In this document: one piece after another, positions 27,438 through 43,982 of the stretch
How the letters are laid out: each line of letters begins with the position of its first letter
Numbering within the stretch: position 1 is the first letter of the stretch
Assembly: GCF_021869535.1 (NCBI RefSeq)
Contig: NW_026262668.1
Span: forward strand, 16,244,001-16,308,000
Length of the DNA: 64,000 bases
Direction of reading: 5' to 3'
Source of the DNA: Mytilus californianus
Taxonomy: Eukaryota
Notes under the pieces: generated by a model
The model's input: the letters and a program-made list of their open reading frames with translations, nothing else
What the model was told of the DNA's origin: nothing
Databases searched by the model: none
Translations under genes and position numbers: made by a program

Positions 27438-27584
27438 TCAGTTACTCTTTCCAAAACAAGCCAGGAGGATCAAGAAGAGATAGACTATATCAATATATAG
27501 CTGTAAGGCTCCATACACGTACTCCTCTGGAGAAAGCTCATGTTTCTTGCCACCTACCACCATCTGGGTGTCATACACAAGGAA
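27438..27584 (-). CDS. Lifeguard terminal coding exon (FLVYDTQMVVGGKKHELSPEEYVYGALQLYIDIVYLFLILLACFGKSN*)
   Basis: ttttcag| acceptor; matches the C-terminal 48 aa of ORF 27438-27689. Confidence 0.95.
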   Translation of the reverse strand, partial: FLVYDTQMVVGGKKHELSPEEYVYGALQLYIDIVYLFLILLACFGKSN

Positions 27585-36500: not shown

Positions 36501-39500
36501 TTCATAAGTTCCTTGGTTGTTCCTAGTGAATAATTGAATTCTGTAGATTATCCATGATTTGATTTGATTTTTGTGTTTTTGATGCCACTTTAAGCACCGC
36601 TTTTGGGCTATTTCGTGGCGGCCAGTTTTTATTGGTGGAGGAAGCTGGAGTGCCCGGAGAAAACCACAGGCCTTCGATAGGAAAACTGACAATCCTAGTC
36701 AATTAAGATTGGAGTCAAGTGCACCTGCACGAGCAGGGTTCGAACTTACAACCTCAGTGTTGACTGGCTAGTGATTACAGTAGTAACTACTTAGACCAAT
36801 CAGCCACAGAGGCCCCGATTATCCAAGATATCTGTAATTAAATATGTAATCCACTAACGATTTTATCCTATCATGCCAATCATTTGCATTCATTTAGTAA
36901 ATGCATCACTTGGCTACTACATCGTCAATGAATGGGACTGGTCTAGCTATGCAAATGACCTACGTAAACGTCACACTGTCTATGAGGTAACGCTTGCAAC
37001 ATTGAGCACCAAATTTGATTTATTCCAGTTTCTCTTTCTCTGGATGAAAAATGTCTTATATTTAACAACCTGTATGGTTCTACCCTACACCCCGTAAAAA
37101 AGATCTCAAATTTCCAAATTTCAATAAAACTTCTTTAAATAATCGTAAACGTTGCTTCACGTTACACTTTGTGGTCGAATTTCCCTAAAAAAAATGCCAG
37201 ATTCGGACTAAGACTGGGGATATATTTGTTATCTACGTTCATATTCATAGATATGGTTATTTTAACACCCTTCAGTACCCTGTACCCCCATTCGGCTTTG
37301 CCTCAGGGCGTACTTGGATACTTCAGGGTGTTAAAATACCCATATCTACAGATATGAACGTAGATAACTTATAATATATTATACTTACTACGATACCCAA
37401 TAAAACCAAGATCCTGTTGTCTGTATAAATTGTTTGATCGGTGCACTAAAAGAAAAAACAAAAATTTATTGATCATTTAAGTTAAGAAAAATGTAAAAAT
37501 TCTGGACAGGAAATGATCCACTTGTATTTCACTTCAATCTCTATCAAAATTTGAAAACATTTTTCTATAAAAAAAAATTTCAATTAGCTCAAAGATTTAT
37601 TTACAAAATCACATATCTGAGATGAAGAGATCTTCTTATTTCAGCTATTGGAGTAATATAAATGATAACTTTCATTTTACATCTTGCAAGTCAATATCTC
37701 ATTCTACAAGCATTTGCACCAAATTCATCATAAGTAAAGTTAAGAAGATTTTGCTTCTGTATAATACTTAGGAGAAATGGTATGTTTATATAAGATTACT
37801 TTAAGATATAGACACATGATGTGGAAATCTTGCACTATATAATACTTGTTTATTCATGGGTAAGCAGATCCAGTTAGGCATAGGGCACCCGTCATCTCAA
37901 AACCTATAGTTTATGATCTGCTGAAGAAATCTTGACAATAAGATAACTATAATATATAATTAACACAATACTTTTTGTATATAATTGATAGTTAGAAGAT
38001 ATTCATTGTCTCTGTTCCGTACACTGTACTGGAAACATATTCATAAGAGTTTTTTTACAATATTAGTACACTATAAAAGTTGAAAATTTTACAATGCTTT
38101 GATTTCTTAGCAAAATCGTCCTGAATGACATTGTATAAAATTACTTACACAAGAGAAAACAAACAAACAACGCCAAAGGTCACCAGTAACTGAATCATCA
38201 GTATAAGGTAAACCTAAAATTAAAAATCACAATCATGCTTTTATTCAAAATTATCACAATCATGCTTTTATTCAAAATTTATGTTCATCATAAAAAAGTT
38301 TCAATACAAATGATTTTTAACTGAATTGCATTAAATACCACACTAACACATTATATATGAGAATTTTAATTTTAATTCCAGTTAAATCAAAAGTGTAAAT
38401 TGCTTTTCCTGTGCATAAATCTACAAACAGTCATTATAGGTAGAAAGAAAAACATCTAACTACATACCTTTCTGATAAACGCATGTCAAGCATCTAACTA
38501 CTTACCTTTCTGATAAACGCATGTCAAGCATCTAACTACATACCTTTCTGATGAACACATGTCAAGCATCTAACTACATACCTTTCTGATAAATGCATGT
38601 CAAGCATCTAACTACATACCTTTCTGATGAACGCATGTCAAGCATCTAACTACATACCTTTCTGATAAACGCATGTCAAGCATCTAACTACATACCTTTC
38701 TGATGAACATATGTCAAGCATCTAACTACATACCTTTCTGATGAACACGTCAAGCATCTAACTACATACCTTTTTGATGAACACATGTCAAGCATTTTAC
38801 TACATACCTTTCTGATAAACGCATGTCAAGCATCTAACTACATACCTTTCTGATGAACACATGTCAAGCATCTAACTACATACCTTTCTGATAAATGCAT
38901 GTCAAGCATCTAACTACATACCTTTCTGATAAAGGCATGTCAAGCATCTAACTACATACCTTTCTGATAAACGCATGTCAAGCATCTAACTACATACCTT
39001 TCTGATGAACACATGTCAAGCATCTAACTACATACCTTTCTGATGAACGCATGTGAAGCATCTAACTACATACCTTTCTGATGAATGCATGTCAAGCATC
39101 TAACTACATACCTTTCTAATGAACACATGTCAAGCATCTAACTACATACCTTTCTGATAAACGCATGTCAAGCATCTAACTACATACCTTTCTGATGAAC
39201 GCATGTCAAGCATCTAACTACATACCTTTCTGATGAATGCATGTCAAGCATCTAACTACATACCTTTCTGAGGAACGCATGTCAAGCATCTAACTACATA
39301 CCTTTCTGATGAACGCATGTCAAGCATCTAACTACATACCTTTCTGATGAACGCATGTCTCACAGCCTTGTCACTGAAAGAATTACCAAACGGACTATCT
39401 GCAAATCCTGTCTCATAGTTACTGTCAGCTATTCTATCTGTTAAATAAGTAAGATTAAATGTGTTACATGCATTTCTGGTAATCATACACAATTTGACAA

Positions 39501-41766
39501 ATTTGCTAAAGATGCATGACTATTTATCTATCAAGTGTTTGTGGGCACTGAAAGGGAAAAGATGGCTTTCATTTTGTAATTTTGTGAATTTTTAAATAAA
39601 ACATTGAATTGTATTTTGCAAGGCAAGTTAAAAATTTGAGTTATTTTCCTTTGTTCATGATTTTTCATTTGTAGTTAAACCTAGATTTATAACAGATTCA
39701 TACACCATGCATTACTTATGTAACTTTTGATAAAAAATGTTTTCTTGACAAGTATGGTAATTCAAATACACATCATATTGTAACTTAAATATCAAAATAT
39801 AACATATCATCAATAAATTGCACGACATTGACTGGATAGGACCTAAATAATGATCACTTCACTGCACTGTATTGTTTGAACTATCAAAGGAAGAAGAGAT
39901 CAACCCTGGAAGATACAGATATCAAGTCAGTACCATAGGGTTTTCATTGCATTTCATGCAATCTTTACCCAAAAATTAAGGTTTTCTCAAATTCATTTGA
40001 CAATTTTTCCAAACAAAATAAATTGCACATCGACATATTATACACAACAACTTACAATTTCATTTATGTTGTACCCATAGTTTTGAAGTTTATCTGTTTC
40101 GAAAAAGTATTTCTCACATTTGTAATTTTCTAAAAAAATACTTTTTCGAAACAGATAAACTTCAAATCTATGTTCATTTAAGATTTGTGAAGATTTTCCA
40201 ATTCGTTCAGAAAAAAACTATAGATGGTGACGTTCCCTTGTCACCATCTTATGGTGTTTATATATCTCAACTTGTACAATTTGCTCTTGTATGTAACCAC
40301 GTATTAGATTTTAGCGAGAGAAATTTATATATTACTGAAAAATTATTACACCAGGGTTTTCGATATCATTAACTAGTCAAAACATTTACTAAATTTTATC
40401 ATCAGTATAAGGCATCATTCGTAAATATAACTCCATATGCAGACATCTTATATGTTCGGGTATTTCACATCCAATCTTTTATGGTAATATTCTTTACAAA
40501 GCACAAAAATGTCAGTATTCACCTCAAAAGCTAACAAAACCTTTAAACAGACTTATTAAGAAGGGATATAGTTACCATACTGTTGTCAGGTCATTAAAGA
40601 TTGTATATTTTGGCTTTAATATTGATTCGCTTATAGGGTCTTTGCATCGGAATTAAACATATTTATTCTAAAACCAGTTGTTGGCATGACACGGGTTATG
40701 TTCTTCTCATATATTTTATGACGGTATAATACTAAACCCCTAACAGGAGGGATTGTGCCTGATATTCATATGATGAAGACATAATCTTTCAATCAGTTTA
40801 ATTGAGGTCTGGAGCTGGCATGTCAGTAACTGCTAGTAGTCTGTTGTTATTTATGTATTATTGTCATTTTGTTTATTTTCTTTTGTTTCCTATTCTGACA
40901 TCGGACTCGGACTTCTCTTAAACTGAGTTTTACTGTGCGTACTGTTGTATGTTTGTTTTTTCTACATTGGCTAGAGGTATAGGGGGAGGGTTGAGATCTC
41001 AAAAAACATGTTTAACCCGCCGCATTTTTGCGCCTGTCCAAAGTCAGGAGCCTCTGGCCTTTGTTAGTCTTGTATCATTTTTAATCTTAGTTTCTTGTGT
41101 ATAATTTGGAGTTTAGTATGACGTCCATTATCACTGAACTAGTATACATATTTGTTTAGGGGCCAGCTGAAGGACGCCTCCGGGTGCGGGAGTTTCTCGC
41201 TGCATTGAAGACCCATTGGTGGCCTTCAGCTGTTGTCTGCTCTATGGTCGGGTTGTTGTCTCTTTGACACATTCCCCATTTCCATTCTCAATTTTATAAT
41301 TTACTTTTATTAAACATACCATTCTAGAATGATAGTACTGTTGATTCATTACTAATCTTTGAATACCATTTTCTCTGGATTGTGTTGGTATACATATGGT
41401 ATAGGGAAACCATGAATTTAAATGTTCAACAGAACACACATTTTCTAAAAGCTTGTATACAAACTTGGGCAAATCCATGAAATAAAATATCCACGAAAAT
41501 ATAAGTTTTCCTCAATCCAAGAAAATTGGTATCACTGAAGATAAATGAATCCACAGTACTGAATGTTTCTGTGTGTTGTATAAATAAGACTTACTTTTAG
41601 GTATGTTGGTTGGTGGAGGATCTACACCTGAACTATATGACTTCTGTGGAGGAGGATCTACTGCTGATGCGTATGTTGGAGGCAGTGCTGTTGGTGTACT
41701 GTACTGTGTATTGTAATTGGACCCCAATATGTGTGGTGCTTGATTTGGTTCCTGGTTATATGCCAT
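27438..41766 (-). CDS. LFG: Protein lifeguard (TMBIM / Bax inhibitor-1 family, LFG1/FAIM2/GRINA-like), 306 aa, 10 coding exons
   Basis: Exons 41766-41595, 39437-39340, 38213-38149, 37445-37389, 33123-33033, 32230-32193, 31321-31234, 29350-29234, 28932-28885 and 27584-27438 join in frame with GT-AG ends. Product has a Pro-rich N-terminus, SFSDKAVRHAFIRKVYLILMIQLLVT, RRKFPGNF, LFAIQTKVDFT and YDTQ...ELSPEEY...ALQLYIDIV, all Lifeguard family signatures. The exact vertebrate ortholog cannot be assigned. Confidence 0.95.
28885..28932 (-). CDS. Lifeguard coding exon 9 (IMDCVYGGLAALVFSL)
   Basis: tttcag| acceptor, |gtaaga donor; 48 nt. Confidence 0.9.
29234..29350 (-). CDS. Lifeguard coding exon 8 (VDFTMCSGLLFALLMVLILFGWSCLIFYFVFPADVFAWR)
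   Basis: ttttag| acceptor, |gtaagg donor; 117 nt. Confidence 0.92.
31234..31321 (-). CDS. Lifeguard coding exon 7 (FYDTTIVFVAAGVTCLVCLALSLFAIQTK)
   Basis: ttgtag| acceptor, |gtaaga donor. Confidence 0.92.
32193..32230 (-). CDS. Lifeguard coding exon 6 (TLAFSYMVGTIS)
   Basis: ttttgcag| acceptor; weak CAG|GTTCAG donor required by frame and family motif. Confidence 0.85.
32268..32476. mobile_element. MITE with tac(t/c)gtggattcatt...aatgattccacagta terminal inverted repeats
   Basis: Imperfect 15-bp TIRs, TA ends; partial sibling at 41420-41557. Confidence 0.7.
33033..33123 (-). CDS. Lifeguard coding exon 5 (GTFLVTYIVLVCIPSVRRKFPGNFICLAVF)
   Basis: ttacag| acceptor, |gtaagt donor. Confidence 0.92.
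33166..34397 (+). mobile_element. HINE/Helentron-associated element carrying a ~147-bp satellite core (about 7 units)
   Basis: gaggtc anchors at 33315, 33462, 33610, 33757, 33904, 34050 and 34206; (GCC)n tract; 3' hairpin gtcgagc..tgcgac-aaaa-gtcgca..gctcgac; sits in A/T tracts. Confidence 0.8.
36197..36353. repeat. 43-bp tandem repeat, about 3.7 units
   Basis: caggtgtg at 36199, 36242, 36285 and 36328. Confidence 0.85.
36556..36816 (-). mobile_element. tRNA-derived SINE with a Meta/V-type central domain and (AAATC)n tail
   Basis: Minus strand: A box gtggctgattggt, B box gttcgaacc, core ggttttctccgggcactccagcttcctcc; partial copy at 24196-24350. Confidence 0.8.
37228..37368. mobile_element. 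Palindromic MITE
   Basis: 17-bp perfect TIR gttatctacgttcatat/atatgaacgtagataac with imperfect pairing continuing inward. Confidence 0.75.
37389..37445 (-). CDS. Lifeguard coding exon 4 (APIKQFIQTTGSWFYWVS)
   Basis: cttttag| acceptor, |gtaagt donor; phase 2 to 2. Confidence 0.9.
38149..38213 (-). CDS. Lifeguard coding exon 3 (VYLILMIQLLVTFGVVCLFSL)
   Basis: ttttag| acceptor, |gtaagt donor; first transmembrane helix. Confidence 0.92.
38452..39359 (-). repeat. 38-bp minisatellite (24 units) made of the last 20 nt of Lifeguard coding exon 2 plus the first 18 nt of the intron
   Basis: Minus-strand unit gacatgcgttcatcagaaag|gtatgtagttagatgctt; donor hexamers counted from 38462 to 39334. Confidence 0.97.
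39340..39437 (-). CDS. Lifeguard coding exon 2 (RIADSNYETGFADSPFGNSFSDKAVRHAFIRK)
   Basis: aacag| acceptor; AAG|GTATGT donor, which is the first unit of the 38-bp array. Confidence 0.92.
40205..41296 (+). mobile_element. 5'-truncated Penelope-like retroelement: decayed RT thumb region plus long 3' tail
   Basis: DGDVPLSPSYGVYISQLVQFALVCNHVLDFSERNLYITEKLLHQGFRYH*LVKTF matches the YGVYISQL..F...C motif of PLE RTs; in-frame stop; tail 40985-41296 recurs inverted at 49363-49720. Confidence 0.7.
41595..41766 (-). CDS. Lifeguard coding exon 1 (MAYNQ...NIPK)
   Basis: ATG at 41766; |gtaagt donor in phase 1; upstream AG near 41786 implies a 5' UTR intron. Confidence 0.85.
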
Positions 41767-43982
41767 TATAAAATGTATCTTCTATCTACCAATAAAAGTA
41801 GTATACTGTTTACATATAAAAGACACCAGAAAGAGTTTGCTTTAATCACGTTAATTCTCTTAATTTTCTCAAAACATTTACTTGTATAAGTAATTTTTTT
41901 TTTAAATCCCTAAATTTAAAGTTCTCAAGTTTTGGGATATAAAAACATGCCTTAAACAATTTTTTCTCTGGTAAGCTCATAATTTTTTATTAGAGTTCAA
42001 GGTTTCATCTCATTAATTCAACAAAGAAACTAATTGCGCAAAGATCTTAAGAAATTGCGCAAGTCCTTCAGAAATTGCCCCTTGGAGGTTTGTAAATGAG
42101 CAGTGTTTTGAAGATAACAGCCAAATGAGATTTTCATTGTCCATGAAATTACACTTAAATGATAAGTAAAGACATTTGCAAAGGACAGACAAACTAAAAA
42201 TTCTATTAGAGCAAAGAAGTCCTGAGAAATTCAAGAAAATAAGATAGCATGACTTTTTTACTTGTATAAGTAAAAAAAATCTGAATGTCAAAGGGACATA
42301 ACTAAGCCATTAAAAATAATTTACCTATACAAGTAAATAAAATACACTTGTATAAGTATCTTACAAATCTACTTATATAAGTATATTAATATTTACTTCT
42401 TCAAGTAAATAAAAATAACTTGTACAAGTAGTACCCCTGACTGCATGTACACAAATGTATCCTTTAATTTTAAGATTTTCCCTAGTATATTTTTGCAACT
42501 TTATAACTATTTGTTTGTTCAGTCAACTTATTGAAAATATTTATCAGGACATATAACTTCAATTGTTTTTTTTTCTAATCTGACTTTCAAGGGAGAAGTG
42601 ACTTCTCTTTTTGAATCTGACAGGAGAAGTGTTGACATTAAAGATAAACATGATAGAGAGAGGGGCTTGTTCACTTGTGATGCTACAAAGTTTTCTGGCC
42701 ACAGTATTGCTATTTGCCATTTGTCATGTTTGTATATATCCCTATTTGTTTCATACAGATATGCTAACTATAAATTCAACATTTTCCATTGTATGTCAAT
42801 ATATTAGCACATGCATGTATAATGTAACTTGTTGTTTTTGTCAATTGTCAATCATCTGCCATGTCAATATAATCATTTATTTTTTTTTATTTATTTTTTT
42901 TGGGGGGGGTAGATAACAGTGAGCAGTGGCATTCATGAGTCATGTTTAACGGCAAATAGGTAGTATCCAATCAACAGTTGTAACTACTGAACTACATGTA
43001 CCTTTACTAGTTTTCTGTAGTAGAAAGCACATTTTGACCCAAGGCCTGCTTTCCATATTGTGTGCCATTCTTTTACATGTATTTCCTTAAAATTTCATCA
43101 GAAAGAATTAAATATTATGGCTGTTTACAGCACAAAAATTTACTCTTGAGTATAGGTAAGATTTCAGGCATGGCAAGAACTACATATATAATTTAAATGA
43201 ATATTGTTTCAGAAAATTTAAAAGTTTTCCTGGATTTTGAGGTTTCTTTTTTTTTGTCCCACAGAAGTTGCCAAAGTTGCCAAGTTGCCAAGCTAGGTTT
43301 GGAAAAAATTTTATGAGACATACCAGTACCCTCATGTAATTATTGTATTGAGTTGAATAGATTGACATGAACAATAGAGGGATAATAAATATCTGCCTAA
43401 CAATAAGTGATTTAAATTGTGTAAACAACGTAAAATTTGAAATAAGAAGTTTATGCATAAATCCCAGGGACATATATATGGATATATATTTATTTTTTTA
43501 ATCATTTTCAAAAAGTTGGTCATCAGGTGTAAAAAGCTTCATTTTTTACGATTTTTTGTCCTTTTTCTTGACCAGGAAGGCCGAGGGATGCTGATAGAAG
43601 TATCTTAATGTAGTATGCATGTAGAGTGGGCCCCTGTGAACACATAAATCACAACAAAGCTTAGGTCAGAGTCGTACTGATCTTGGTACAGCAGTCTAAA
43701 GAAGGTCATTTGCACCAAAAATCCAGAATTTCTCGATTTTTTCCTGATTTTTGGCTTCAACTGGACCTGCAACTGGAAGTAGTCATTCACTTAGTGGATT
43801 TCAATAACAAACACAATCAGTAGTTATATTCCCGCGTGTTTACACTACTTTTGAAGGTTCTAGGCCTCTGAACTGCCTGTGTCAGACAGGTTGAGGGAAC
43901 ATACATCAATTTTGAAATAGACATTAATAAATATTAAACATGAATGGTAAAAATATACAGCTTATATTATGTAATTGTGACA

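Follow-up and report, generated by a model that had tools for sequence, protein, structure and literature searches.

A tandem array of 24 splice donors at the exon 2/intron 2 junction of a Mytilus californianus lifeguard 2-like gene, probably removed as ordinary intron

The window analyzed here, a 64-kb stretch of Mytilus californianus DNA, carries a gene of the lifeguard (TMBIM, Bax1-I) family on its minus strand. Homologue searches together with tblastn against the window identified the product as P0269, annotated as "protein lifeguard 2-like [Mytilus californianus]" (306 amino acids), which maps to the window as ten coding exons from 41766 to 27441. The genomic locus of P0269 (GCA_021869535.1, JAKFGE010000002.1) is identical to the window base for base. 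The full-length protein carries PF01027, and homologues across phyla bear the lifeguard 2-like name; judging by the family name, the mussel protein may have an anti-apoptotic, calcium-leak activity. The 3′ UTR probably extends to about 26550. Two candidate guide proteins were dropped, namely P0002 from the representative search, which is mispredicted, and P0018, which is tunicate-like; the useful guides came from the second homologue search.

The window contains a single lifeguard 2-like copy within 22–27 kb on either side. M. edulis possesses tandem paralogues of 304 and 308 amino acids that lie about 13 kb apart (L004 and L002; OY782957.1, about 4.155–4.218 Mb), and M. galloprovincialis also has both paralogues, as judged by protein accession.

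Coding exon 2 ends on the minus strand in ...GACAAGGCTGTGAGACATGCGTTCATCAGAAAG/GTATGT (here and below, the slash marks a splice junction), and P0269 reads ...AFIRK/VYLILMIQ... across the junction of exons 2 and 3. The same FIRK/VYLIL motif is found in Lifeguard proteins of tunicates, echinoderms, and other molluscs. Because the annotated protein and its homologues share this junction motif, the splice from the first donor to the acceptor at 38213 is the productive one. The features of the locus are compiled in Table 1.

Table 1. Features of the lifeguard 2-like gene and of the repeated exon 2 donor (positions in the window)
Feature	Position	Strand	Remarks
Coding exon 1 (MAYNQEPN..., Pro-rich N terminus)	41592–41766	−	RNA depth about 21–22x, one strand only
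Coding exon 2, 98 nt, ...SFSDKAVRHAFIRK	39340–39437	−	final 20 nt form the exonic part of unit 1
Authentic, most upstream donor GTATGT, preceded by AAG	39334–39339	−	annotated protein P0269 reads FIRK/VYLIL
In-frame TAG for any transcript running past donor 1	39328–39330	−	predicted product 93 amino acids
Minisatellite, 24 units	38450–39359	−	
Unit 23 pseudo-donor GTAAGT	38500–38505	−	AAG + GTAAGT fits 9/9 positions of MAG/GURAGU
Intron 2, unique remainder	38214–38449	−	acceptor AG at 38215–38214
Coding exon 3 (VYLILMIQLLVTFGVVCLFSLV), start of the Bax1-I membrane domain	38148–38213	−	
Last coding exon, stop codon directly after	27441–27584	−	Bax1-I Pfam match 37.8 bits (cut-off 34.1)

At the end of exon 2 lies a minisatellite of 24 tandem units, 23 of 38 nt and one of 36 nt. 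Tandem Repeats Finder reports it as 38453–39359 with a period of 38, 23.9 copies, 94% matches, and a score of 1597. A pattern search of the 64-kb window recovered 23 full 38-nt units, all of them inside the array and none elsewhere in the window (0 expected from shuffled sequence); the 24th unit has been shortened to 36 nt by a 2-bp deletion. Repeat finding and unit alignment bear out the composition proposed in the initial annotation, according to which each unit joins the final 20 nt of coding exon 2 to the initial 18 nt of intron 2. The units run head to tail and are of minisatellite size, the first monomer straddles the end of exon 2, and the donor is reiterated in the intron. Unit 1 is continuous with unique exon 2 sequence, and the last unit continues into unique intron.

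The 24 AAG/GT donors described earlier are indeed present in 24/24 units, spaced at 38 nt save for one interval of 36 nt. The donor hexamer is GTATGT in 23 units and GTAAGT in unit 23, where the match to the consensus is as perfect as had been claimed; this pseudo-donor sits 834 nt further downstream than the authentic one. Each of the 23 donors that follow the first is intact and strong. We also found, in line with the earlier reading, that only the exon-proximal donor keeps the conserved frame. Readthrough of donor 1 gives AAG GTA TGT AGT TAG, which adds three residues to Lys-90 and ends the predicted product at 93 amino acids, ahead of the first hydrophobic segment, which is encoded by exon 3. 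The same stop awaits transcripts spliced at any of the other donors.

When the units are compared with one another, 8 of the 20 columns in the exonic half are variable versus 4 of the 18 in the intronic half. This column variability gives no sign of donor-specific conservation across the units and no hint of selection on the donor. Two sites, a CpG (GCG to GTG or GCA) and a C/T position spread by block duplication, account for most of the variant cells. The CpG is the only one in the unit, and the concentration of inter-unit differences there would fit decay of a methylated CpG within a gene body. Structure prediction for the RNA of the junction plus four units revealed nothing notable that could mask the pseudo-donors (z = 0.39).

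Minisatellites are very dense in the window. Twenty-one separate tandem arrays (39 Tandem Repeats Finder rows) cover about 10.5 kb, or about 16% of its length, and the families include units of 147, 55, and 28 bp. With roughly one array per 3 kb and nine donors in this 14-kb gene, the chance that a 38-bp seed straddles a donor comes, by our rough estimate, to about 2%. At about 2% per gene, junction arrays should be frequent in the M. californianus genome wherever they are tolerated, and arrays on the donor side would be tolerated because of a first-donor rule. A further duplication, a perfect 27-bp × 2 tandem repeat with an AATAAA in each copy, lies in intron 2 at 38226–38279 (minus strand). 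It falls in the branch-point/polypyrimidine region and stops 10 nt short of the acceptor AG of exon 3. The corresponding site of M. coruscus holds one copy, which makes the duplication a recent event confined to M. californianus. Intron 1 harbors a very high-copy repeat or transposon (39508–41517), for which the summed DNA word depth reaches millions compared with about 60 in single-copy flank; RNA run X21 shows transcripts from both of its strands, at a depth of up to about 500.

The orthologous junctions of other mussels indicate where the array came from. In an independent assembly of M. coruscus, the same junction carries 13.0 copies of the 38-bp unit (L003, 5931–6426). The junction is single-copy in M. 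trossulus and in M. edulis, for which both tandem paralogues and two assemblies were compared; intron 2 of these orthologues contains no further AAGGT, and the loci of both species are collinear with that of M. californianus through the introns. The single-copy junction of M. edulis reads ...AGAAAG/GTAAGTGGTTAGATGCTTTTCTC..., and the last M. californianus unit runs into ...TTTCTTTCTACC..., the sequence found behind the lone junction copy of the other species. From the single copy and this shared continuation it follows that the junction itself was amplified in place, as the initial annotation had held. A dispersed satellite was ruled out as the source, since the unit occurs nowhere else in the window and the M. 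edulis junction is single-copy, which points to local amplification.

The single-copy junction is likely to be the ancestral state, and a gain of the array in the ancestor shared by M. californianus and M. coruscus is the most economical history; with two clades compared, the array may alternatively have been lost in the edulis group. Copy number was compared between the two species and differs (24 versus 13). The unit variants are species-specific, with a C-to-T change in 9 M. californianus units and GTATTATAG in 2 M. coruscus units, and units 10–15 and 18–23 of M. californianus show an identical order of variants. Such a pattern in the alignment is what minisatellites usually show when they turn over by unequal exchange. 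Among the 13 M. coruscus units, 3 are without AAGGT and 3 more have weakened donors, in an assembly that is error-prone at this spot. That two species retain the array can be reconciled with neutrality and with function alike.

The M. coruscus assembly (GCA_011752425.2) is scrambled at exon 2 where the array starts (L003, 5833–5990) and lacks about 43 nt of exon 2 that mRNA contigs of M. coruscus itself contain. The deposited M. coruscus protein (227 amino acids) does not contain exon 2 because of this assembly and annotation error, which was caused by the array.

Donor choice was assessed from binned RNA and DNA read depth over positions 37900–41900. The stranded raw-read RNA run X21 has reads on one strand only, in keeping with a minus-strand gene, with bin means of about 22x in exon 1, about 11x in exon 2, and about 17x in exon 3. 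The depth of the bins between 38302 and 39239 (unique intron and units 4–24) is zero throughout. This zero is not a mapping blind spot, because DNA runs do place array sequence in bins 38436–38703. Since an array-including transcript would give tens of reads per unit of share, we estimate that transcripts including most of the array make up less than about 4–5% at steady state. In run X8, whose contigs look like RNA, exons 2 and 3 are likewise covered and the array is not. Units 1–3 share a depth bin with the end of exon 2, and the bins do not separate donors 2 and 3; nor does zero steady-state coverage measure the choice of downstream donors, because nonsense-mediated decay (NMD) would remove those isoforms. 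A query of the protein collection with exon 1 retrieved neither the truncated 93-amino acid product nor N-terminal fragments, which is a weak negative.

Transcripts of M. coruscus are informative on the same point. Full-length mRNA contigs from four runs (L008–L011) match the genomic exons of L003 at 99–100%; in them, a single-copy exon 2 is followed immediately by exon 3 despite the 13-copy array. At the orthologous M. coruscus array, the mature mRNA uses the authentic, most upstream donor. For M. californianus, use of the first donor fits the annotated protein, the RNA depth along the gene, and the mRNAs of M. coruscus; donors 2–3 may be used at a low level, and some isoforms may be cleared by NMD.

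We therefore favor, with a probability of roughly 0.8, the reading that the array is a near-neutral junction minisatellite of the kind represented by mirages and by intron 7 (IVS7) of human F7, which probably predates the split between M. californianus and M. coruscus and is spliced out with the intron from the first donor. In the common ancestor of the two species, slippage or unequal exchange would have multiplied a 38-bp segment across the exon 2 donor. Subsequent turnover may then have led to 24 and 13 copies, to species-specific unit variants, and to a partial higher-order block of 8 units. The spliceosome would pick the most upstream donor and splice out the other 23 copies as ordinary intron, which would yield the normal 306-amino acid protein. 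By analogy, the first-donor rule of human F7 would extend to a mollusc. Rather than serving a function, the array is most likely a tolerated, near-neutral feature.

This reading presupposes that the array exists. Tandem repeats are a classic source of assembly errors, the M. coruscus assembly is damaged right beside its own array, and the initial annotation had itself asked whether long reads would expose an assembly expansion. However, the M. californianus assembly was built from 45x PacBio HiFi data with a mean read length of 13.4 kb (PMC9710001), and a 0.9-kb array fits well inside single reads of ∼13 kb and is spanned many times, which makes an expansion unlikely. In DNA runs X11 (another study) and X3, from two other individuals, the unique-intron contigs end at 38479, where the repeat begins, and array-derived contigs in other individuals' runs have 2.5–3x the flank depth. 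Together with the array in the independently assembled sister species, these data agree that the array is genuine and not an assembly expansion or artefact, and we give the artefact hardly any weight. U1 suppresses intronic polyadenylation, and a beneficial role of the array as a U1-binding platform was considered, either as an intronic enhancer that defines the 98-nt exon 2 or for telescripting, by suppressing early cleavage at the AATAAA motifs ahead of exon 3. The array has been kept in two species, the M. californianus donors are intact in every unit, and two AATAAA motifs lie within the 27-bp duplication. Yet the orthologues of M. edulis and M. trossulus manage without an array, donors are missing or weakened in 6 of the 13 M. 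coruscus units (albeit in an error-prone assembly), the duplication with the AATAAA motifs postdates the array and is confined to M. californianus, and the RNA is without notable structure. We consider such a platform very unlikely.

The initial annotation had gone further and proposed that copy number acts as a heritable dial, with downstream donors competing with the authentic one or titrating U1 from it, so that array length would set Lifeguard output through length-dependent premature stops and NMD. The 23 intact, near-identical downstream donors, one of them a perfect GTAAGT, the in-frame TAG just past the first donor, and the difference in copy number between the species would all suit this model. 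It also has a parallel in CBS, where, according to the summary in PMC1557585, a 31-bp VNTR has been linked to reduced enzyme activity and where, as in IFI6, the two nearest pseudo-sites are used. Against it stand the zero RNA depth over units 4–24 next to about 11–17x in exons 2–3, the normal mRNAs of M. coruscus, the finding that identical downstream sites gave no competition in the F7 experiments (PMC1557585), the more variable exonic and less variable intronic columns without donor-specific conservation, and, as a weak negative, the search for truncated products described above. The claim of a dial is thus unsupported by the array depth, by splicing in M. coruscus, and by the F7 precedent; the evidence leans against it, and donor competition or U1 titration at this locus appears unlikely to us. 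The idea is not new either, as it was raised earlier by studies of the CBS and F7 VNTRs, going by the references in PMC1557585. In one form of the idea, array length would be a cis-acting quantitative modifier of Lifeguard expression, and long alleles or alleles with the perfect GTAAGT would divert a share of transcripts to downstream donors and NMD or alter splicing kinetics. This is quite unlikely; if true, the many junction minisatellites in Mytilus would form a class of heritable expression dials.

Under the favored reading of a near-neutral array that is spliced out via its first donor, the single locus matters little, being one more example of an architecture described since the 1990s. 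Its modest value is that it offers a natural experiment on how a mollusc chooses among 5′ splice sites, since 24 near-identical strong donors are present and the mRNA still appears normal; the survival of the array in two species adds to this value. Junction arrays of Mytilus could serve to ask whether the F7 rule that the most upstream donor wins holds outside mammals.

The architecture of a minisatellite at an exon–intron junction is already known from human F7, IFI6, CBS, LMNB2, and PDGFA, and from the mirages of amphioxus. The closest counterpart is intron 7 of F7, where a 37-bp VNTR of 5–9 copies begins with a monomer that straddles the exon boundary (Borensztajn et al. 2006, PMC1557585). 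As in the mussel array, the authentic donor is followed by identical pseudo-donors, and the units are of nearly the same size (37 versus 38 bp). The F7 unit comprises 4 exonic and 33 intronic nt, whereas the mussel unit comprises 20 and 18 nt and is present in 24 copies. Fifty minigene constructs demonstrated that the identical pseudo-donors of F7 are functional but silent and that the most upstream functional donor is always chosen (PMC1557585). The most upstream donor is thus the only one found in normal F7 mRNA; the mussel evidence fits likewise, whereas the experimental dissection of donor choice belongs to F7. The F7 donor is weak (TGG/GTGGGT), in contrast to the strong donor of the mussel (AAG/GTATGT), which is accompanied by one perfect copy and operates in a mollusc. 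In the F7 minigenes, sites up to a consensus value of 91 gave no competition and only perfect-consensus sites competed, tested at the first or second pseudo-site (PMC1557585). The perfect-consensus site was 1–2 units away in F7, whereas it is 22 units away in the mussel.

The remaining human examples differ in how strictly the first donor is used. Intron 2 of IFI6 (6-16) has an authentic donor followed by about 25 pseudo-sites, compared with 23 in the mussel, and the two nearest are used constitutively (Turri et al. 1995, as cited in PMC1557585); in the mussel, such use would be out of frame and lead to an immediate stop. For CBS, the overview in PMC1557585 gives a 31-bp VNTR of 15–20 copies at an exon/intron border with two pseudo-sites used and an association with reduced enzyme activity, and for the 100-bp repeat of LMNB2 and the 81-bp repeat of PDGFA it states that only the authentic donor is used. 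In all three genes, as in the mussel, an exon/intron junction is reiterated through much of the intron, although the units are of other sizes and the genes are different. The precedent for tying copy number to gene output is CBS, whereas the mussel locus is known from sequence and RNA depth. Among invertebrates, the mirages in Adh3 and globin genes of amphioxus are, in the account of PMC3087553, minisatellite-like tandem duplications of exon–intron boundaries that leave regular splicing undisturbed, vary in length between haplotypes, and undergo concerted evolution. Like the mussel array, they are junction duplications in an invertebrate; they affect both 5′ and 3′ exon boundaries, with units of 150–160 bp in the globin genes, whereas the Mytilus array lies on the donor side, has a 38-bp unit, and is found in two species.
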